The position numbers and the translations under genes are program-made. The notes below the pieces were generated by a model, which had not been told where the DNA came from, made no database searches, and saw only the letters and a list, made by a program, of their open reading frames with translations. A stretch of 64,000 bases of DNA from Bispira polyomma. Its lineage: Eukaryota. Where the stretch lies: contig OZ287752.1 in the NCBI GenBank assembly GCA_965649765.1, positions 11,966,001 to 12,030,000 on the forward strand, written 5' to 3'. Position 1 is the first letter of the stretch; every line of letters begins with the position of its first letter. Of this stretch, positions 4,747-16,963 are shown in pieces.

Positions 4747-5604
4747 TCACACAAACATATTGATGCCTGCAGGGTGTAGGGTAGGGAAGGCCCAGATAAA
4801 ATATAATTCCTGGCGTCTGTGCCTGTCTGGGCAATCTGGGTTGGTGTCCTTCCCAAACCATTGAATAATGCTGAACTCCATGTGTTTCACTAAATGATTG
4901 TTTTGTGAAAAATGTCTGGAGACAGGTGTAGAGTTTTGTAACTTTGAGTTTTGAACACTTCTGTAGTGTTCATTCATTCTATTTTTGAATGGTCGTTTTG
5001 TTTCTCCAATGTATTGGAGACCACATTTAGCACAATTAATAATGTATATGACATTATTTAATTCACAAGTGAGTCTATTTCTGGGAGGAATGTTGATGCA
5101 TGATACTTCACCATATTTCTGGTTGAGGTCTTCCACATACTGAAGTGTAAGTTCTTTTTTACATTTGTTTACACTTTCAGTCCACTTTGTCTTGAAGACT
5201 TCAGATGTGGAGACTGGGGTTGAACATTTAAAGTTACAATGAGAAGTAAACTTCCCACTCTTCAAACTGTCTTTGATGAAGTGAATATTTGATGCAATAT
5301 TCAGCTTCTTTTTAAACAGATTTTTGGCCTTCAAATATAGTGGTTTGGTTTCAGGAGGATAGTTGTCACGACTAAGGCTTCTACCCTCAGTGGATGGTGA
5401 TGAGATTCTTTTTCTCTTTGCACTCTTAACCTTTAGGTCAACTTTGGCCAACTGTTTGGATGCCTCATCTAGTAGTGACAGGGTCTCATTGCTCATCTTG
5501 GTGGTGGGCATTGGGGTACCTGTGTCTGGAGTGTTGAATGCTGTATTCGAGTCCACTTGTAGGTGGTGAATTGCAGAGCTCAGGGCAGTATCACTCACAC
5601 TCAT
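4747..5604 (-). CDS. PLE N-terminal region fused in frame to a GIY-YIG endonuclease, no RT domain
   Basis: TCELNNVIYIINCAKCGLQYIGETKRPFKNRMNEH...PVSRHF...ELYFIW...LHPAGIN is typical of PLE GIY-YIG; uninterrupted 285-aa ORF. Confidence 0.85.
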   Translation of the reverse strand: MSVSDTALSSAIHHLQVDSNTAFNTPDTGTPMPTTKMSNETLSLLDEASKQLAKVDLKVKSAKRKRISSPSTEGRSLSRDNYPPETKPLYLKAKNLFKKKLNIASNIHFIKDSLKSGKFTSHCNFKCSTPVSTSEVFKTKWTESVNKCKKELTLQYVEDLNQKYGEVSCINIPPRNRLTCELNNVIYIINCAKCGLQYIGETKRPFKNRMNEHYRSVQNSKLQNSTPVSRHFSQNNHLVKHMEFSIIQWFGKDTNPDCPDRHRRQELYFIWAFPTLHPAGINMFV

Positions 5605-5899: not shown

Positions 5900-6453
5900 A
5901 GTAGGTTTTCTTGCTTTATTTTCTTCAGATTTTGACTTTTGTGGCCCAGATAGAGAGCCTGTCAATATAACCACAGTTGAAGAAATTTCAAAAGTGGCTC
6001 AGATCATTAGTAATACTGGTCTCCCCAAATATAGGAAAGGCAGAATACCATTAAGTTCTGGTTTGAACATAGGGGCTTGGAAAAAATTTTCAAAAAATTT
6101 CCCAGATAAACTTTTATTGCAATATTTGACTTATGGTTTTTCTTTCTCATTGAGTGAACCAGATCTAATTAAGAATGACAAAGTTAAGAATCACTTATCT
6201 GCACTGCAGTATCCACAGGCAGTTGAGAAATATTTGGATGAGGAAAAAACTTTAGAGGCCATGCTGGGCCCAGAATCAGCAATTAGTACACCTCACTATT
6301 ACTGTTCTCCATTGCTCACTAGGCCTAAGGATACCACCAAACGTAGGGTTATACTAAATTTATCTCACCCCTAGAGTTCATTTTAAAATTTCCCACGATT
6401 GATGACATCACACGTGCCTTGCAACAAACTGAGAACGCAGTCCTATTTAAAGT
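5900..6453 (+). pseudogene. Pol/RT N-terminal part of YR element 1
   Basis: LLQYLTYGF, NHLSALQYP, HYYCSPLLTRPKDTTKRRVILNLSHP; frame continues after the LINE at 13881 (KFDVVRAFRNL). Confidence 0.85.
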
Positions 6454-6751
6454 GTTTTTTTTTATTGTTCTTTTTGGTTTACATATATACAAGTCAAAAA
6501 TACGACACAAATTCAACCTTATTGAGAAAACACATTCAATATAATCACTTAATTACCAATTTTCTATAGTCATTTAGTAGTAATTACATTCGAAAAGAGC
6601 AAAACATCAAATTACCTAGGTACATCTATAAACACACGTACTTATATTTATATATACAGGCAAAAAAACAATACTCTTACACATGTACAACAGTTCTTCT
6701 AATTTTAGGTCTATAAAGGGTTTACAATACAATACATTATTATACCACTAA

Positions 6752-9700
6752 TTATAATTCTAAAAAGATAGCATGCCATGTCAACCATTTCCTTTTAAAT
6801 CCTTCGTATGTATTATTAACTTTTGACAACATCTCCTGTTCAAAATATTTTGTTTCAGCAATTTTTTGTAAATGATATATGTTAAAATCTCTGTTTTTTT
6901 GGGCATTTGTAAAAATATAATGTCTCGTAATTGTTAAGATAAAATTTAGTGGCCAAAAGTTTTGATCTTGTTCTAAAGTACCTAATATTTTGACTGATTT
7001 TTTCATATGGACTTTAATTCCGAGTTTGATTTAATCCAGGATATTACATTATTCCATAACATGTTTGATTTGATGCACTCCGAAAATAAGTGTACCATTG
7101 ATTCAGTATTCTGATTACACAGCCTACATCGATCACTATTAGACAGTTTTATTTTAAATAACAATTCTTTTGTCCCTAAAATTCTATGTAAAATTCGGTA
7201 TTGAAACCATATAAATCCATTATCATTTATAGTATAAAAACAAACTTTATATATTATTTTCCATATGTTTGGAATTTCTTCAATATTTAAAACTAAGCGC
7301 CATTTTGTTTCATTTTTTGGTAAATTGTCACATGATTCTTGCATTTTTAAATAAATATTTTTACTTCCGGTATGGGAGTTTACTAAAATTCTTATATGCA
7401 ATGGAATATATGGTCTTAAAAAAGGACAGACAATATTTTTCGCACTTTGCAGTAAAACTGGCTGAACAAAACGTTTTACCGTAAAGTAGTTAAGAATATT
7501 CACTGGAAAGTTATACCGAAACTTGATCTCTTCCAAGGTTAAGATGCAGCCTTCTAAGTTTACAATATCTCCAATAACATGAATACCATGCTTAAACCAA
7601 TCTGGAAAGAAAAGTTTATCCATACCAATATGGCTATTGAACCAAATACTGCTGCAGTATATGTCTTTAGTAGTGTGAACTTTTGAAGTTCTCTAAAATA
7701 AGTAAGAACTATTTTCCAAAAGGGACCACTCACCCCCTAGAGTAAATAATTTTGTTAGATCTCCAGCTACATGTTTAAGGAGGATAAACCAGTTTTTTCT
7801 TCTTACTGAAATCATACGCTTTATCCAACTTACTTTCAAAGATTTTTCAAAATTATATATATTAACCATGCTGAGCCCCCCCTGTAAATTATTTTTACAC
7901 AGTTGTTTTCTGTTTATCTTGTCTGGTTTCCCATCCCATATATATTTAAATAAGAGATTGTTGATGTCATTGAGAATCTTAACTGGTGTTGGGATTGATA
8001 AAGTGGATAAATTTTGATAATATTATTGTCTTAATAATTGTGATTTTTCCAGTCGGTGTCAGGTATCTGAATCTCCATGATTGGAGTGTGTGTTGGGCTC
8101 TTGTCAATGCTTTCTCATAGTTCAAACTTGGTATTTCAGACAAATCACATGAAAATTTTATTCCTAAAAGATTAAACTTAGAGTCTCCCCAGTGTAGTTT
8201 TGATGTAACTTTCAATTTTTCTTTTGAGCCAATTTTACTACCAATCCAGACAAGTTGAGTTTTTTCAGTATTCATTTTTAGGCCCGACAAATTACCAAAA
8301 ATTTCTAAAACATTCAAAGTTGCCTGCAAAGAATCTACATTGCCATCTAAAATCATTGTTATGTCATCTGCAAATTGTGTGAGCTTAAAAATCTCTTTTC
8401 TAATTTGGAGGCCCTTAATTTTTGAAGATTTCTGAATGAGAAAGCTTAATATTTCGGCTACCAAAAAAAAAAGATACGGAGCAATTGGGTCTCCTTGTCT
8501 ACAGCCCCTTTCTACCGGTATTGGATTAGATAAAACTCCACATTGTATTACGTATGCATTTATATCTCTGTTAACAAGTTTTATCCAGTTAATGAAATTT
8601 TCACAGAAACCAAAATAATTGAGTACTTTATAGAGGAAAGCCCATGAGACAGAATCAAATGCTTTCTCAAAATCAATTAGCATTAATAGTCCTGGAATTT
8701 TATTTTCTTCTGTATAGTTCATTAAATCATATATAAGTCTAGTATTTTCGCCTATGCATGTGCCACTTATGAAGCCAGATTGGTTTGGAGAGATAATATC
8801 CGCTAAAAGTGGTTTTAATCTTTCGGCTATAGAGGCAGAAGCTAGCTTATAGATAACACACAATAGCGATATAGGGCGCCAGTTTTTTAAAAGTTTTTGA
8901 TCCTTATCACCCTTTGGTATACAGGTTATGATATTCTGTCTCATTGAGATAGTTAAAAGGCCTTTGGAGTAGCACAGATTTATAGCATTAGTTATGTAAT
9001 ATTTTAATTTACACCAAAACACTTTTAAAAAGTCAGCTGAAATACCATCGATTCCAGGTGACTTATTATTTTTCATTTTTTTAAGTGCATTGCTTAGTTC
9101 CATGACCGACAAAGCATTTCCTAGTTCTAGCTTTGGAATTTGTTTCAGTCCGGCAAGATCAATTTCCTTACTCGAATTATATTCATCAAGCGCATTGTCC
9201 CTACTTTTGAAGAGATTACGATAAAAAATTTCAATTTCTTCAAATATTTGCTTTTGATCTGTAACAATAGAGCCATTCTTATTTTGCAGTTTTCTTATTG
9301 TTTTTTCAGTAAAATGTTTACTTTCCAATTTACAAAAGAAGGAGGTTGGCTTTTCCCCTTCATTAAGCCACTGTATTCTAGCTCGAGTCATGTATCCTTT
9401 TATTTTTTCTTTTCTAATATTTTCCAATTCTGTTCGCTTGTCATCCAATAAAGTTGTACTATTCTGGTTCATTGGATTACTTTCTAGAATGGCTATGTCA
9501 TTCATTAAATGTTTCTCAAGCAAATTTTGTTTCTTTTTAAAATTTGTTGCAAATTTTATTGTTTCGCCTCGAAATCTTAAGAACAACATTTCTAAGAAAC
9601 TATCGTCGTCAATAGAAAACTTAATGTTATTATTATTTATTTTTAAGTAGTCCAAATTATAAACAGGTAAAGCATATTTTAATTTCTCTTCCTCAATAAC

Positions 9701-10504
9701 TGTGTTGATCAGATTTAAATATTCTTTCTTATTCAAATAGCTATTGTTAAATTTCCATATACCACAGCCATTTTTGAAATTACAAGTATTTAGCTGCAAT
9801 TCTACAATAGAATGATCTGATTTATAGCTCGGTTTTATAACACATGATTCAACAATGTCAGTCATGGAATTCGATATTAAAAAGTAATCTAGTCTTGCTT
9901 GTTTTATCGGAGTTTTTTTTCTCCATGAAAATCGTTTAGCATCAGGATTTAAATATCGAAATATATCCACTAAATTTATTTCATTTAACATATCTATGAC
10001 TTTAGTTCTGGCTTGGGGGTTATTTATATTGACATAATTGTAACAATCTTTTATAGGGTCCATAACAAGGTTAAAGTCGACACAGATTACAACATAGTCA
10101 GCTTCATCATTTTTAGCCAATTGCAAGATTTTGCTAAAAAATTCTGGACTATCCTTATTTGGAGCATAAATATTGATAAGATTTAATTTCATTGTGCCAC
10201 ATGTAATAAGTAATTGCAAAATATTTCACTCTTTGTCCTTGTTCACTTCAGTTATCTTATACTCAAAATTGTTGTTTAGCAAGATTAAGACACCACGGGA
10301 GTTGGTTTTTGTTCCATTAAAATAGCAGTCATGTCAAACTTGTTTCAAAGAGGTCATATCGCTTTCCAGGAGGTGGGTATCCTGCAGACATACAATAGAG
10401 GCATTTGTTTCTTTCAGGTAATTTAGAACATCAATTCTCTTTCTAAAGTTGCGAAGCCCTTGACAATTTGCAGACAACACTTTAATGTTAGATAGATTCT
10501 TCAT
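6752..10504 (-). pseudogene. LINE ORF2: AP endonuclease, reverse transcriptase and C-terminal zinc finger, several frameshifts
   Basis: Starts MKNLSNIKVLSANCQGLR..CLQDTH at 10504; RLDYFL, SDH; KSPGIDG, NWRPISLL, LIDFEKAFDSV, GCRQGDPIAP, QFADD; CRLC..ESMVHLFSEC. Confidence 0.93.
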
Positions 10505-11985
10505 ATTGAATTTTAAATTTCACTTGCAGACAACCAAAATTTTTAATGTTTAGCAGATGTACAACAATGTTCAAACATACCAAAAATATAACGGTACTCC
10601 TTAAAACTTTATCGTGAAAATCGATAAGTGAATGTTTGAAAATCATGTTATGTGAATAACAACAACACTTACTATATTTTTCATGAATCTGTGTCAACAT
10701 ATCTACAAAAATATACAAAATGACATACACACTACAGAAAACACATATATGTACAATCCACCTTTTGGTGGCAAGTTTCATTTTTATGAAACAAGAAAAA
10801 CAAAAGGGGAACTATATACAGTTAGAGTCTACAATATGCACTCAAAGCTATTTAGTATTACAATTAAAGAGGACTGTCTAATGTTAATAATTATTACACA
10901 CAATCTACGTGCTGCAAGAAATAACAATAGCTGTTAGTTTATAGCTGTTTACAACCCTATACTAGTAATAACTATACAACATATAGTGTTGAAATATTTT
11001 TTACTCACAGTGTTTGTCACTGTAATATATATTTAATTTATAGTTGTTTATTCTGAGTGTAATACAGCTGCAGCAAAACTTGTTATTTAACAGATAATAT
11101 GATGCAATAAAACTATAGCCACTGTTTGCCACCAAATGTCATATTACTAAGTTAAAGTTGTCATTCAAATTCAATATGTATTGCAAAAAACATACAGAAG
11201 AAAAAATGAGACAATAAAGTGTTAATAACAGCTAAGAATTTTAGGACTGTACTAAATAACTAATCCCTGAATTCATATTCATAGTAAGTTTCAATTTTTC
11301 AAAATGTAATTTTACCACATCTTTTAACAAAGGTACATCATCAAAGATAATGACATGAAATAATCATGTGTAAAAGTCAATAAATGTGATTTATTAATAC
11401 GATAATATTTGCAATATGTGCTAAAAAAAGTAACACAGATTGTGACTTTAGCACAGTGCTACATCCTCAGGACCGTCATACAGCCACTGTTAATATTAGT
11501 GGTAATTATGTTTAACAATTTACAATATGTGTTTGTGGATAAGGTCAGTCTGTTTCGTTTAATAATAATCGTTATATCACAGAAATTGTGATGCAGTATA
11601 AGATAATCATATGGCTATAAATTGTAATTATATGTTTTAACATATTATATTATCATGCTGTCTTCCGACTGTCATTAAGATTGATAATACATTCATCATT
11701 GAAATATATTCGTAAGACAAACATAATAATTATCACTTTTCAAATATATAATTGGACTACCCCTTAAGGCAGTCGTACATTTGTTGGTAAATTTCTTATG
11801 TGAGGAACAATTGTGGTAAACAAATCAGCTAACCATATGTTAAGCAATTTAACTCTAATTAGACAAAAATAAACAGCTACAAATAGACAGTAGTACTTAA
11901 GTAATTGAATTACAGCCAATAAGGTAAAGTATTACTGACATATAATATGCCATCTGGACAGATTAAGTTAGTATCATAGTATAGG

Positions 11986-13205
11986 TCAGTTTAGTGATGC
12001 TCTTACTTCCATTAATATTTCACCAAGTCTGTTTTTACCTTTCCACTTAGCATTGTCCCAGATATCCTTGTCCTGTAGAGATAGTCCCACCCCACAATAC
12101 GAGTCTCTTGGATTTGCTTCAATTAAGGTTGATTGGCCTGTGTTCTTCAGAAAAGCAGCGAGTTCAGGATTCTGTGTGAATTTTGCATCAATTCCTAACT
12201 TCATATATCCGTCACACACTTTATTCCATTCAGCACTGTTGAAATTTTCTACCTTGTGACCTAGTTTCTTGGCAGTCACCGGGTCATCCGTGCCTAAGAT
12301 TGAAGTAGCTGTCACCTCATCATTGAAGTATTTTGACTTTCTGAACATAAAATGTTGTTCAGCAGAATCAAATTGCAGGCCATCCTTCATGAAGGATGAT
12401 GGATAGTGGTTGGAAAGAATTGAGTGCTTGGTGAAAAAGGCTACAAAATTTCCACTCTTAATTGTTGTCAAGGTATTTGGTTTCAATTCATCATGTAGTT
12501 TATCCAACTCTTTACTGGTGTACTGCTTACCGTTTAAAACTAGCTTATCGAAATTCAACCTTGCTTTGTACTTGCCATTTGAAGTATAAGCTGCTTGTAG
12601 GACAGGAATAAAGTTTTGGCGTTGCTTTCTCACCTCAGATGGAAAATCCTCTGTGATAAAAATTTTGGAATGTTTAAACTTTTCCTTTTCCATCAGCACT
12701 TTTTGACGATCTTTGAAGTGATGAAATTTGACAATGATAGGGCTATCTTTCTGACCAGTAATCCAGAGTCTGTGAGCGCGTTCAATGTCTCTAGGTTGGA
12801 GTACAATACTATGTTTGGAACACAAATTAATGATTAAGTCCTCACAATTCTCAGGTGCTCCTGTTGGGGTTGACTTCTTGATACCAAAAATCTTCAAGTT
12901 ATTCCTTCTTGACCTTCCTTCCATTGAGAGAAGTCTTTCTTCTAACTCATTGATTTTATCTTCATAAGTTTGTAATTTGGCACTCATCATCTTGTTCTTG
13001 GACTCCATATGATTCAGTTTTTCTGTAAGTAGCGTAATTTGATGAACTTGCTCAGAAGTAAATTTTACAGTCTGCTTGACTTGGTCCAAGGGGAAACTAA
13101 CTCATAGTCTCTTTTCAACTGTTTGCTTATTACTCCATTGGTAGTACTAGTTTTGCTGGTGCTTCCACGATTTCCAGCACCCTTATTACTGTCTTTATTA
13201 GGCAT
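11986..13205 (-). CDS. LINE ORF1p: coiled coil, L1-type RRM and CTD, plus C-terminal NADAR (YbiA-like) domain; frameshift or deletion near 13090
   Basis: Likely ATG at 13205 (MPNKDSNKG..KRDYELVSP); RSRRNNLKIFGI, IERAHRL, PIIVKF, ITEDFP; NADAR motifs LSNHYPS, SAEQHFM..K, AKKLG, AKFTQNPEL..L..TG, EANPRDSYCGVG, GKNRLGEILMEVR. Confidence 0.88.
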
Positions 13206-13880
13206 TTTCAATGGTGTTCTGCACTCTATTTGGGATTATTACTGTACCAAGTCTTTATTCAATAAGCATATATATATTATTCTGTTGTGTTATCCTTTTC
13301 TTATGTAACTATAAGACTTGTTTGTTACATTCAGTTGGTATTTCTTATCCTTTTAATCCTTTAAACTGTAACCCCTGTTTGTTATGACACAAGGCATACC
13401 AAACACAATATCACATCTGTTGAAAAATGTACTTGATAAATGTGTTGAAAAGTGTACCTGATGAACCATAACATTCAAATTTACAAAGATCCATTTATTG
13501 TGCTGAAGAAATACCAGGTAGCACTCCACAATATTGATAGACAGGTTCACACCCTCCACAGGTTCAATCAACAGAACACTAGTACATTTCTTTAAATCAA
13601 ATTATCAAGCCAATTTGTGTCATATATGGAATCTGCTGTACACCTCTACTGTATATTCAATATGGCTTGCATATAAATCATCCCAAATCATCAAACTTTT
13701 TGCCTCTAATTTAAGCTGTAATATAGCTTATTTTATTTACTTTTAGTACCAGGGTAATCTATGCACATTTAAAAATCACATTATCTAAAAATAATAGTCA
13801 ATCCTCTTCAATTTCCCACATAAAATCTTATAGACTCCCACAGCTAAAAAATTCACATGTCTCTCTCAGACCTCTCCCAG

Positions 13881-15525
13881 TCCTGGTTAAATTTGACGTG
13901 GTGCGCGCATTTAGAAACCTGCATGTCAACCCTGCGTACGCAATGAAATTAGTAATTTTTTGGCAAGATAAATACTATGTAGACCCTGCTATTGCATTTG
14001 GCTGGGTACATGGAAGCACAGCGTTTCAGCGTTGTATGGACGCCATAACCTCTTACATGTGTGGCCAGGGTTTTAATCATGAAGCAAGTTTCAATCAATA
14101 CTAAGCAGATTATTATATGTCTACAAATGTGTGCATCCAGCACGTATGTTCGTTAATAGACTTCTAGCTTCCTTTTTGGTGCACCACACTAGTAAACGCT
14201 TTAAGGTTACAAATGATATGAAGAGCGATTTGAAATGGTTTATAAAATTTCCGAAGAAATTCAATGGAATTATTTACATTGACCATGACGTTATACATTT
14301 CTCTGATGAGTTACATTTGGATTCCTGTTTAACAGGTTTTGGGGGCATATGGAAAAACGAGGTATATGCTACCCCTTTTCATGACTTATTCGATTGAAAA
14401 CATACAATCGTTCATTTGGAAATGCTTAACATAATTATCGCTTTGAAAATTTGGGCTGAGCAATGGAGATACAAAAGAGTAAGCATCAACTGTGATAACA
14501 TGGCTGTGGTTCTGGTGGTTGAATCACAGAAAACTAAAGATAATTTTCTAGCTTTATGTTTGAGGAATTGTTACGGTCACGGGAGCAAGTGCGGTAGCAA
14601 TTACCGGTTGCTTTCAATTTGTAACAGGAAAACACAAAAAGTTTCACTTAATAAATTTATTTAAGAATTAAAATAACAATTACAGTCAACTGAGATACTC
14701 TTAATAGTTTATACAATAATATAATAAGAAAACCAATCTGACCTGACCAAGCTCCTGTCCCTATAACTAACAGTTAAACAAGTTTGTCCACTGTATCCAG
14801 CAATCTGTATTGAGATGAGTTTGGTGCCCACTAACACACAATGCCTGTATCTTGTTATCTGTTCAGTGTCCACAAACACAAAATGTATATATCCAGAGAT
14901 TCTGCACAACTAAGCTATCCATTCCAGGATGCAAACAATATCAAATATGTAGCAGTGCCACTCTCGGGTAAATCTTTAACTTTATATCCAGTTTACTCCA
15001 ATGAGTTTACCACAAAACGTATATAATAACCAGTATATATCCACTTGACACAGAAATAAAGTGTTTCACAATATAGCAGTCCGCATAGCATACCAACTCA
15101 ACAAATTCTAGTCTGTGGCCAGGCTTTCAACCCTTATATATACTAGACCTATAGAAGGCTCTAGAGTATGTAAACAACAGCTACCAGAAGACTTTGGAAT
15201 TAAATGCAAACAGGTCAACACAACTCCAATAAAAACACTACACAGAACCAGCTTCCAGAAGCTTAGGGGTTTTCCCCAATCTATAAATAGATCACTTTAG
15301 CACAGTGCTATTAAATGTAACAGGAATATTTAGCTGATTACAGCAACATATGATGTAATTTTGAATATTAAGCATATCCCAGGTAAAAATAATACCATTG
15401 CTGACACACTCTCTAGGATTTATTCAGAGAAAGGTGCTATTAGGGAGTTGTTACAACCAATTATGAAGAATATTGACTGGAAACCAGTTCCGTTGGAATT
15501 TTTAAAACTAGATTTTTATATATAA
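13881..15525 (+). pseudogene. RT and RNase H remainder of YR element 1, split by a solo LTR
   Basis: AFGWVHGSTAFQR, HLDSCLTGFGG, HLEMLNI, NCDNMAVV, HIPGKNNTIADTLSR. Confidence 0.85.
14569..15322. mobile_element. Solo LTR (754 bp), BEL/Pao- or Gypsy-like
   Basis: TGTTAC...GTAACA termini; perfect 5-bp TSD GGAAT (14564-14568, 15323-15327); removal restores the RNase H frame CLRN/I. Confidence 0.9.
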
Positions 15526-15531
15526 TTGCAG

Positions 15532-16430
15532 GTTCTACTGGGATCTCTCAGCAGTTCATGGATTCAGCCTGGACACGAATTCACTTTTCGTTAAGGCCTA
15601 AGATAAACTTAGCTCATAATAGACAGTTTAAAAAAAGTTTTTTTAGTTTTCTAAAATTCGCTGGCATTGACAAGATTAGTGTTCATGTAGTCATTGCATT
15701 TCTTGAATATTTGGTACAGAACCAAATTTCTCCGGGAGCCATAAAAAATTATATGGCGGCCCTCAGATTTGTAGCCAATAAATATCAATGTGATCTGTCA
15801 CCATTTATCCACAATTCGGTATCACTTTCTATAAGAAGTTTGTCAACTTCAGGCCAAAACCTAAGGGAATCTTTACAATTCACCAATTGGCAAAAATATC
15901 ACAGGCATGTGAGATCCTGGATGACCCCATTTTATATAGAAAAATTTTTCTTCTAGGATTTTTGAGACTTTCAAATATTTCACCCCATGCTAGAGTGGCG
16001 TTTGATCCCTCTGGGCATTTCTTGAGGCAGGATGTGGTTTTTGGCCATCCTGGGTCCCTCATTATCCTTAAGTGGGCCAATAACCTACAAAATACAACAT
16101 ATACACATCTTATTCAAATACCAGTCTTAAATAACTGTGTCCAGTTACTGCTATTCCTACACTGCTTACGTCTAGGATTGTTTTCCCCACAGCACCACTT
16201 TTTGCAAGTAGCAGTCCCCCTTATCACATTGTGGTGAACTCCCACGTCAGGACAGCCTTGGAAAGAATCTTAAACCACATTGGCTTACAATACAGTTCAC
16301 ATGGCTTCCACACCTTTAGAAGGTCAGGAGCCACTTTTGCCTTCAATAACAATGTTTCCTTACAGAATATCATGACCCATGGTCTCTGGAGATCATCAGC
16401 CGTTGGATATATCTCCAGATATATCTCCAG
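15532..16430 (+). pseudogene. Tyrosine recombinase of YR element 1 (frameshifted)
   Basis: FLEYLVQN..NYMAALRF; GFLRLSN (catalytic R); HGFHTFRRSGA (HxxR); HGLWRSSAVGY. Confidence 0.9.
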
Positions 16431-16963
16431 TGGTACCACTTGCTTTTGCCTCCTCCATTCCCTCCTCCCTTGAGTTTTGCTTGGGTCCTAAAAATTTGGT
16501 AAAAAGTCTACAAATTTTAAGGTTTTACTATTTTTAATATAAATATAGAAATGTATATATGAAACTAATATGTAAAATAAAAGCTCAAATGGAATGTTTT
16601 ACTACCTTCTTCATTAAATACTTCATAAACTTTATCATTCTTGGCCTGAACTTTATTTGACCTTATACATCTGACCTTTCAACTTGGGGACTGTAGTGAG
16701 CAAGGTTACTTTAGGAACCTGCTACTTTAGTCCACAACACCTTTATCTTATTTCTACCTTAAAAATTTAACATCACAACACCTTATTTTAATACCATCTG
16801 TCTATCCTAGGTATAAGCCAATCAGAGGGCTGAAAATTCCCACCTTTCTAAGTTTCAGTATGTTCAGACATCCATATTGCATTATCAGACTCAAGCAGCA
16901 AGTTGCAATGTTAAGTCATAATTGATAAAAAATTCTTTTGTTATAATCTGTTTTGGAAACTTG

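Follow-up and report, generated by a model that had tools for sequence, protein, structure and literature searches.

A YbiA-type NADAR domain on the ORF1 protein of a LINE family in Bispira polyomma: a candidate eraser of base ADP-ribosylation

The 64,000-nucleotide stretch of the Bispira polyomma genome analysed here (assembly GCA_965649765.1, contig OZ287752.1, positions 11,966,001 to 12,030,000; referred to below as the window) contains a copy of a long interspersed nuclear element (LINE) whose first open reading frame (ORF1) encodes an L1-type protein running into a C-terminal NADAR domain. The ORF1 protein (ORF1p) carries a coiled coil, an RNA recognition motif (RRM) and a C-terminal domain (CTD) ahead of NADAR, and that this is the true anatomy of a protein encoded within a LINE we regard as practically certain. 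The features of the locus are collected in Table 1. An earlier note on this DNA had placed the NADAR domain at 11986-12455; the domain does lie there, but the strand has to be corrected to minus, the plus-strand translation of this interval being full of stops.

The identity of the domain was established by both profile and structure searches. The Pfam family PF08719 (NADAR) matches residues 221-366 of the window protein with an E-value of 2.3e-39 and 135.7 bits (cut-off 35.1), covering model positions 9-162 of 163, and the same region finds two structures in the PDB, 8bau from Phytophthora nicotianae (E 4.6e-19) and 2b3w, YbiA of E. coli (E 1.3e-9). Structural comparison was based on an AlphaFold2 model of the intact 443-aa ORF1p of a sister copy (L002:1273-2601, plus strand), in which window residue i corresponds to sister residue i+76. 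The mean pLDDT of this model is 87 and exceeds 90 in the NADAR part, which adopts the alpha-helical core fold of YbiA; Foldseek aligns it with 8bau (E 3.5e-12, TMt 0.77) and with 2b3w (TMt 0.75). The series of motifs from which the earlier note had recognised the domain therefore belongs to a true NADAR domain and is not a chance resemblance.

The front part of the protein is related to L1 ORF1p, as the note had also claimed, and is fused in frame to NADAR. The alignment behind the family profile comprised the window copy and its sister's intact ORF1, three further lineages of the genome and 22 database relatives. Against the PDB this profile matches human L1 ORF1p (2ykp/2yko, E 1.1e-13) from the end of the coiled coil through RRM and CTD, the RRM-CTD structure 2ldy (2.5e-9) and the RRM structure 2w7a (2.5e-6), and on the NADAR side 8bau (7.6e-39) and YbiA (4.4e-27). 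In the AlphaFold2 model of the sister protein, a long helix occupies residues 48-136; the RRM follows at about 137-246, a small CTD at 247-284 and NADAR at 285-443. Foldseek gave three strong matches and no others, to 8bau, to YbiA and to the trimer of human L1 ORF1p (TMt up to 0.69; 0.67 for 2yko). As a single sequence, the N-terminal 211 residues gave no match to Transposase_22 (PF02994) even at E<=10, only coiled-coil noise; the relation to L1 ORF1p is visible by profile and fold only, not by a single-sequence Pfam search.

The boundaries of the element were read by comparison with the sister copy, which lies on another chromosome (C10; loci L002 and L031). The two are 95-97% identical by blastn from window position 13879 to 6455, and their flanks are unrelated. 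Both are bounded by target site duplications (TSDs), an exact one of 14 bp in the sister and one of 13 bp with two mismatches in the window copy, and the A-rich tail of the sister is the longer one. Because the alignment ends at unrelated flanks, TSDs are present and ORF2 follows downstream, the NADAR domain is cargo of the element and not part of a neighbouring gene, in agreement with the earlier note. In the window, ORF2 retains matches to RVT_1 (E 2e-34) and Exo_endo_phos_2 on 7979-10219 and to zf-RVT on 7003-7623; ORF2 of the sister, which contains an APE endonuclease, a reverse transcriptase (RT) and zf-RVT, starts 1487 nt past the ORF1 stop. This layout, an APE-RT-zf-RVT ORF2 together with TSDs and an A-rich tail, is that of the L1/Tx1 superfamily. 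There is no sign of site-specific insertion, since the TSDs of the window and sister copies differ. The spacer between the ORF1 stop and the ORF2 ATG measures about 1.5 kb in these two copies, about 0.7 kb in two other loci (L014 and L033) and 3.2 kb in a public contig (L032); no joints with intron-like ends across the spacer were found in contigs of public runs.

The window copy is an ordinary insertion and is dead, with neither an intact ORF1 nor an intact ORF2. About 112 nt have been deleted at 13090 (sister positions 1389-1499 are absent from the window, and the extra letters are present in a public run contig, X3 record 14), so that the true ATG is now out of frame, and ORF2 is split into several pieces by stops and frameshifts. 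A third lesion replaces by Cys the Trp of the D..WG motif, which corresponds to W133 of 8bau, a residue in contact with the pyrophosphate of ADP-ribose (PMC11543638). The earlier note had taken this replacement for decay of a single copy, and a count of copies, made in place of a consensus, bears this out: Trp occupies the position in the other nine of nine family copies with a readable motif, and a public run contig has C at 12094 on the plus strand, which gives TGG. It is therefore the window copy, not the family, that lacks the D..WG Trp. The sister ORF1 has a private Trp-to-Cys change of its own (L002 residue 364) at the other conserved Trp, W89 of 8bau, where the window copy retains Trp; this 443-aa protein from C10 is the only fully open ORF1 read from the window's own subfamily. 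Contig depth summed over window positions 8000-13900 in two runs (X1 and X3) rises from about 100-700 over ORF1 and the 5' untranslated region (UTR) to several thousand over ORF2, as expected if most genomic copies are 5'-truncated; the three runs that hold the stretch consist of contigs of unknown kind, which cannot show transcription.

Table 1. Coordinates of the LINE copy and its parts in the window
Feature	Positions	Strand	Basis or remark
LINE copy, ~7.4 kb, L1/Tx1 type, dead	6455..13878	-	blastn against sister copy; ends read
5' TSD copy, TTTAACCAGGACT	13879..13891	-	11 of 13 bases equal to 3' copy
5' UTR	13206..13878	-	Aligned to sister upstream of the sister's ORF1 ATG
Stranded ORF1 start: true ATG (13205) and first ~38 codons	13090..13205	-	Now out of frame
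ORF1 frame	11986..13089	-	Single open frame, 367 aa; coiled coil, RRM, CTD and NADAR
ORF1p coiled coil, remaining C-terminal part	12910..13089	-	AlphaFold2 helix 48-136 of 443-aa sister; coiled-coil Pfam and PDB matches
ORF1p RRM domain	12580..12909	-	Family profile against 2ykp (1.1e-13) and 2w7a (2.5e-6); Foldseek 2yko, TMt 0.67
ORF1p CTD	12466..12579	-	RRM and CTD covered by 2ldy (E 2.5e-9); AlphaFold2 strands 252-266
NADAR domain, YbiA type	11989..12465	-	Pfam PF08719, 8bau, Foldseek; joined directly to CTD without a long linker
TGT (Cys) codon replacing the ADP-ribose-contacting Trp (W133 of 8bau)	12094..12096	-	Private to window copy
ORF1 stop codon	11986..11988	-	Frame reading
Inter-ORF spacer, ~1.5 kb, AT-rich, without ORF	10505..11985	-	Sequence reading; same length in sister
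ORF2 (APE endonuclease, RT, zf-RVT) with stops and frameshifts	6752..10504	-	Pfam and stop reading
Short A tail, 9-base A run at 3' end	6455..6463	-	Sequence reading
3' TSD copy, TTTAAATAGGACT	6439..6451	-	Sequence reading

The fusion is shared by a large family in the same genome. A search with the window protein gave 2,546 first-look candidates, and the 113 matches that were scored are 41-97% identical to it; nearly all of them span residues 1-366, 68 are free of stops, and typical open frames are about 425-450 aa long. One lineage (L014-L021) is represented by eight almost identical intact copies, with the start of ORF2 about 0.7 kb downstream of ORF1. Wherever intact proteins are mentioned, they are those of natural copies.

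Fusions of the same kind also occur elsewhere. Thirty-six proteins of this architecture came up in a word-based search, and at the public locus P0021, where the protein is 34% identical to the sister ORF1p, an ORF1-NADAR frame is followed 3.2 kb downstream by an APE-RT-zf-RVT ORF2 on a 4-Mb contig. An exhaustive profile search of 1.84 billion representatives returned 6,306 at E<=1e-30. The best 150 of these all score at least 366 bits, and nearly all are proteins of about 330-530 aa in which a single match runs from the coiled coil through to the NADAR end. Counted as clusters at 50% identity, distinct full-length fusions in public data number at least about 150. Relatives in the ESM Atlas carry Annelida labels, and one ORF2 relative has been binned in a metagenome-assembled genome named Candidatus Thiodiazotropha endolucinida, a clam symbiont. 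Each of three very long proteins, P0174 (4240 aa), P0175 (1075 aa) and P0255 (1580 aa), matches the ORF1-NADAR profile in five to seven separate places; probably these are gene models in which several LINE copies have been joined, true multi-NADAR proteins being the lesser alternative. Pairwise distances in the ORF1 core and in NADAR, compared over 139 of the representatives, gave an uninformative r of 0.075, all pairs being about equally saturated, and a tree of NADAR domains that includes stand-alone NADARs is largely unresolved.

Between lineages, the proportion of synonymous differences (pS) is saturated at 0.8-0.98, while that of nonsynonymous differences (pN) is 0.27-0.33 in NADAR against 0.29-0.35 in the RRM and CTD; these are Nei-Gojobori counts on a few pairs, not estimates from a codon model. 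Taken together, the sequence comparisons indicate that in this LINE lineage, which is very large and old, the fusion is the rule and is maintained by selection. The opposite reading, a one-off chimera, an artefact of assembly or annotation, or a neutral passenger, could appeal to the decay of the window copy. It is refuted by the thousands of genomic candidates and the many lineages with intact frames of about 440 aa, by the number of public clusters of full-length fusions, by saturated synonymous sites at a pN of about 0.3, and by the conservation of catalytic residues described below, and we give it next to no probability. On two points at which the earlier note had said that it could be refuted, these data uphold it: other copies of the family keep the domain, and its evolution is not neutral.

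The residues of the active site were followed in the 139 of the best 150 representatives that were aligned, which are 25-45% identical to the sister protein. Six positions of 8bau that matter by mutagenesis or structure (PMC11543638; the chain index of 8bau is the residue number of that paper plus 2) served as reference. The catalytic Glu (E43) is kept in 138 of the 139, the phosphate-binding Lys (K50) in 131, the YbiA-type Glu (E125) in 135, W89 in 138 and D130 in 120; W133 is Trp in 110 and Phe or Tyr in a further 23. Of all positions conserved at 90% or more, 20 of 34 fall in the NADAR part. Compared with 8bau, the window domain itself keeps E43, K50, K75, G78, W89, E125 and D130, the Glu and Lys standing in its AEQ and FRK motifs, and is changed at Y84 (Phe), R79 (His), D86 (Ser) and R93 (Cys), as well as, in this copy only, at W133. 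Conservation of this kind among the representatives speaks for a functional enzyme, not a passenger, and judging from the conserved residues the NADAR domain of intact copies is likely to be an active hydrolase.

The residue at E125 distinguishes NADAR subfamilies, being Glu in the YbiA subfamily, Asp in DarG1 and BC4488 and His in phage NADARs (PMC11543638). The window copy has Glu here, in the motif LIEANP, which places the domain in the YbiA subfamily. An antitoxin of the DarG1 type, associated with DarT1, was considered and rejected: the position holds Glu instead of Asp, and the DarT profile PF14487 has no match in the genome, although the control was silent as well.

A second way to use the fold would be as a binding module, in which NADAR reads ADP-ribose or nucleic acid and anchors the ribonucleoprotein (RNP), for example at ADP-ribosylated DNA breaks, with catalysis unimportant. 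The tight fusion to a nucleic-acid-binding CTD suits such a role, and a non-catalytic use of the fold is made conceivable by a NADAR-like domain on a polymerase-like ORF of the same genome, described below, which lacks both the Lys and the YbiA-type Glu. However, no positions of the ORF1p are better conserved across 139 distant representatives than E43, K50 and E125, which is unexpected under selection for binding only, and we consider a mainly binding role improbable.

If the domain is catalytic, its position on ORF1p suggests what it might do. In live copies NADAR would act as an N-glycosidase, and because ORF1p, which would trimerise, coats the RNA of its own element in many copies, the RNP, and with it the place of target-primed reverse transcription, would be rich in the enzyme. 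There it could take ADP-ribose off guanine or cytosine, whether these bases belong to the LINE RNA, to the nascent cDNA or to target DNA that is single-stranded while reverse transcription proceeds. Template, cDNA and nicked target would all be single-stranded at that site, the preferred state of known NADAR substrates, and with bulky base adducts gone the template would stay readable by the ORF2 protein. The outcome would be repair or counter-defence, analogous to that of orphan phage NADARs against DarT1 and of viral macrodomains. Two published observations provide the background: NADARs, the YbiA type among them, undo the ADP-ribosylation of G and C in single-stranded DNA and RNA (PMC12945103), and T4-like phages carry orphan NADARs as counter-defence against DarTG1 (PMC11825919). 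By analogy with these enzymes, ADP-ribosylated nucleic acid may be the substrate, a proposal that we put at somewhat under an even chance. As an overall explanation of the fusion, an ORF1p-borne NADAR that erases base ADP-ribose in repair or counter-defence is the best we can offer, and we hold it to be about evenly balanced between right and wrong.

Several observations weigh against this proposal. The window copy cannot act, given its frameshift, its broken ORF2 and the loss of Trp to Cys, and no RNA run holds the ORF1-NADAR sequence. The known substrate of E. coli YbiA is an intermediate of the riboflavin pathway, not a nucleic acid. Three ADP-ribose contacts are replaced in the family (R79 by His, D86 by Ser, R93 by Cys) and vary across the lineage. 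Finally, four profiles of ADP-ribosyltransferases, PF14487 (DarT), PF22596 (Scabin-like/pierisin), PF01375 (Enterotoxin_a) and PF03496 (ADPrib_exo_Tox), found no match in the genome; this negative is weak evidence, because the control genomes were silent too and such genes are split by introns. The host guanine ADP-ribosyltransferase that the earlier note had envisaged as a partner, on the model of CARP-1 of clams, has therefore found no support here, within the limits of that search. Most reported homologues of CARP-1 come from bivalves, others from Cnidaria, Porifera and further Bilateria (PMC12945103). Going by the Annelida labels of the ESM Atlas relatives, the host here may be an annelid, and the clam link may not apply to it as a model.

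Conserved catalytic residues would suit any hydrolase role, and an active N-glycosidase might instead act on another modified base, on a NAD-derived RNA end, or on a NAD or ADP-ribose metabolite on or near the LINE RNA. A general RNA-processing role has been suggested for the NADARs of RNA viruses, which would match such an alternative. Processing of the RNA intermediate has likewise been proposed for retroelement NADARs (PMC12477816), and the targets of NADARs not associated with DarT may differ physiologically (PMC11543638). The absence of matches to the four transferase profiles, with its silent controls, also points this way, as do some contacts to adenosine and phosphate that are unlike those of 8bau. 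On the other hand, all NADAR families tested so far, the YbiA type included, remove base-linked ADP-ribose from DNA and RNA (PMC12945103), and conservation in the LINE family extends to W89, D130 and W133, the residues by which 8bau holds the pyrophosphate of ADP-ribose. A different substrate seems to us rather unlikely, if clearly more plausible than a mainly binding role, and removal of base-linked ADP-ribose remains the reading that we prefer.

The same genome contains a second, unrelated family of mobile ORFs with a NADAR tail. A genome search with PF03175 (protein-primed DNA polymerase B) gave 63 matches, among them an intact ORF of 1,124 aa (L040:621-3992, plus strand; G000:C8:57685420-57688791). 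This ORF contains an insert resembling a Vsr endonuclease, and at its C-terminus NADAR scores above the Pfam cut-off (44.8 bits, E 2.1e-11). The polymerase identity of this ORF comes from the genome search alone, because hmmscan did not repeat the PF03175 match. The ORF is multi-copy: a search gave 1,440 first-look candidates, and of the copies scored, about 40 at 57-66% identity, the majority extend over the NADAR part; some open frames reach about 1,800 aa. The tail domain is a divergent NADAR: over 72 residues it shares 26% identity with the one of the LINE, phmmer found no match for it in the PDB, and in the copy read it has Leu for K50, Phe for E125 and Leu for W133. With its key residues replaced, this NADAR may work differently or without catalysis.

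The occurrence of two unrelated NADAR-tailed families in one genome, the LINE ORF1p and a polymerase-like ORF of Polinton type with about 1,100-1,800 aa, is a pattern worth following. As NADARs are carried by both of these families, by a Gypsy lineage of Ectocarpus and by phages, one may speculate that base ADP-ribosylation serves some invertebrates or their microbes as an undescribed restriction system against mobile DNA and RNA, and that NADAR is a recurrent counter-measure, delivered in the LINE case through the coat protein of the RNP. At present we regard this broader scheme as doubtful.

Other mobile elements may have left traces on both sides of the LINE in the window. Just beyond its 3' end, a 285-aa ORF (4747-5604, minus strand) contains a GIY-YIG nuclease domain above the cut-off (E 8.4e-7), which may be the endonuclease end of a Penelope-like element. 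Just beyond its 5' end, a string of short ORFs (14131-16473, plus strand) matches the SAM-like and catalytic domains of phage integrases only weakly, with scores under the cut-off; these ORFs look like remnants of a tyrosine-recombinase element of the DIRS or Crypton type.

The earlier note had presented NADAR on ORF1p as unfamiliar, and in this respect it has to be amended. The ORF1 proteins of several Tx1 LINE families of Crassostrea gigas in Repbase are mentioned in passing to carry YbiA-family NADAR domains, and in a Gypsy lineage of Ectocarpus a NADAR is located at the N-terminus of Pol (PMC12477816, Genome Biol 2025). Apart from this publication, no paper in the library searched joins the terms 'NADAR domain' and 'ORF1'. 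The ORF1-NADAR fusion as such is thus already on record.

If the proposed function is true, it would be the first enzymatic anti-restriction activity on the coat protein of a LINE, and it would mean that nucleic-acid ADP-ribosylation serves against retroelements in animals. To date this modification has been described in bacterial toxin-antitoxin systems, Streptomyces, butterflies and shellfish. Since naturally intact copies of ORF1 exist, the protein is open to direct expression and assay; the window copy matters only as a pointer to the family.

Accessory domains on the nucleic-acid-binding protein are familiar from other LINEs, whose ORF1 add-ons include an esterase (in ORF1 of the CR1/L2 type), PHD and zinc knuckles. 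Viral macrodomains are the classic ADP-ribose erasers carried by viruses, but their fold and chemistry differ from those of NADAR: macrodomains act on protein-, phosphate- and thymine-linked ADP-ribose, whereas NADARs cleave the N-glycosidic bond with G or C. L1 ORF1p of human and mouse (2ykp/2yko, 2ldy, 2w7a) has the same order of coiled coil, RRM and CTD and a similar fold (TMt 0.6-0.69); however, the mammalian protein ends after the CTD without an enzyme domain, and its inter-ORF spacer is tens of bases long, compared with about 1.5 kb here. With 8bau and 2b3w the LINE NADAR has in common the fold, the catalytic Glu together with the Lys, the Glu typical of YbiA, and the Trp and Asp that contact the pyrophosphate, whereas these two are stand-alone single-domain proteins and the LINE domain is tethered to an RNA chaperone and has R79, D86 and R93 replaced.

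Among mobile elements, the Tx1 ORF1 of Crassostrea gigas (PMC12477816) has the same architecture in the same kind of element, and its authors guess at processing of the RNA intermediate. That report devotes to it one sentence and a supplementary alignment, without copy number, selection, catalytic residues or distribution, and the two are likened by description only. The Ectocarpus Gypsy lineage of the same paper is, like the LINE, a retrotransposon with an acquired YbiA-family NADAR, although it is a long terminal repeat element in which the domain, apparently of bacterial origin, sits on Pol and not on an RNA-binding protein. The orphan NADARs of T4-like phages are likewise carried by a mobile element, and the proposed logic is the same, namely the erasure of base ADP-ribosylation from the element's own nucleic acid (PMC11825919). 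Phage and DarG1 NADARs, however, carry His or Asp where the YbiA subfamily has Glu and act against a known bacterial toxin, whereas the host of the LINE is an animal.

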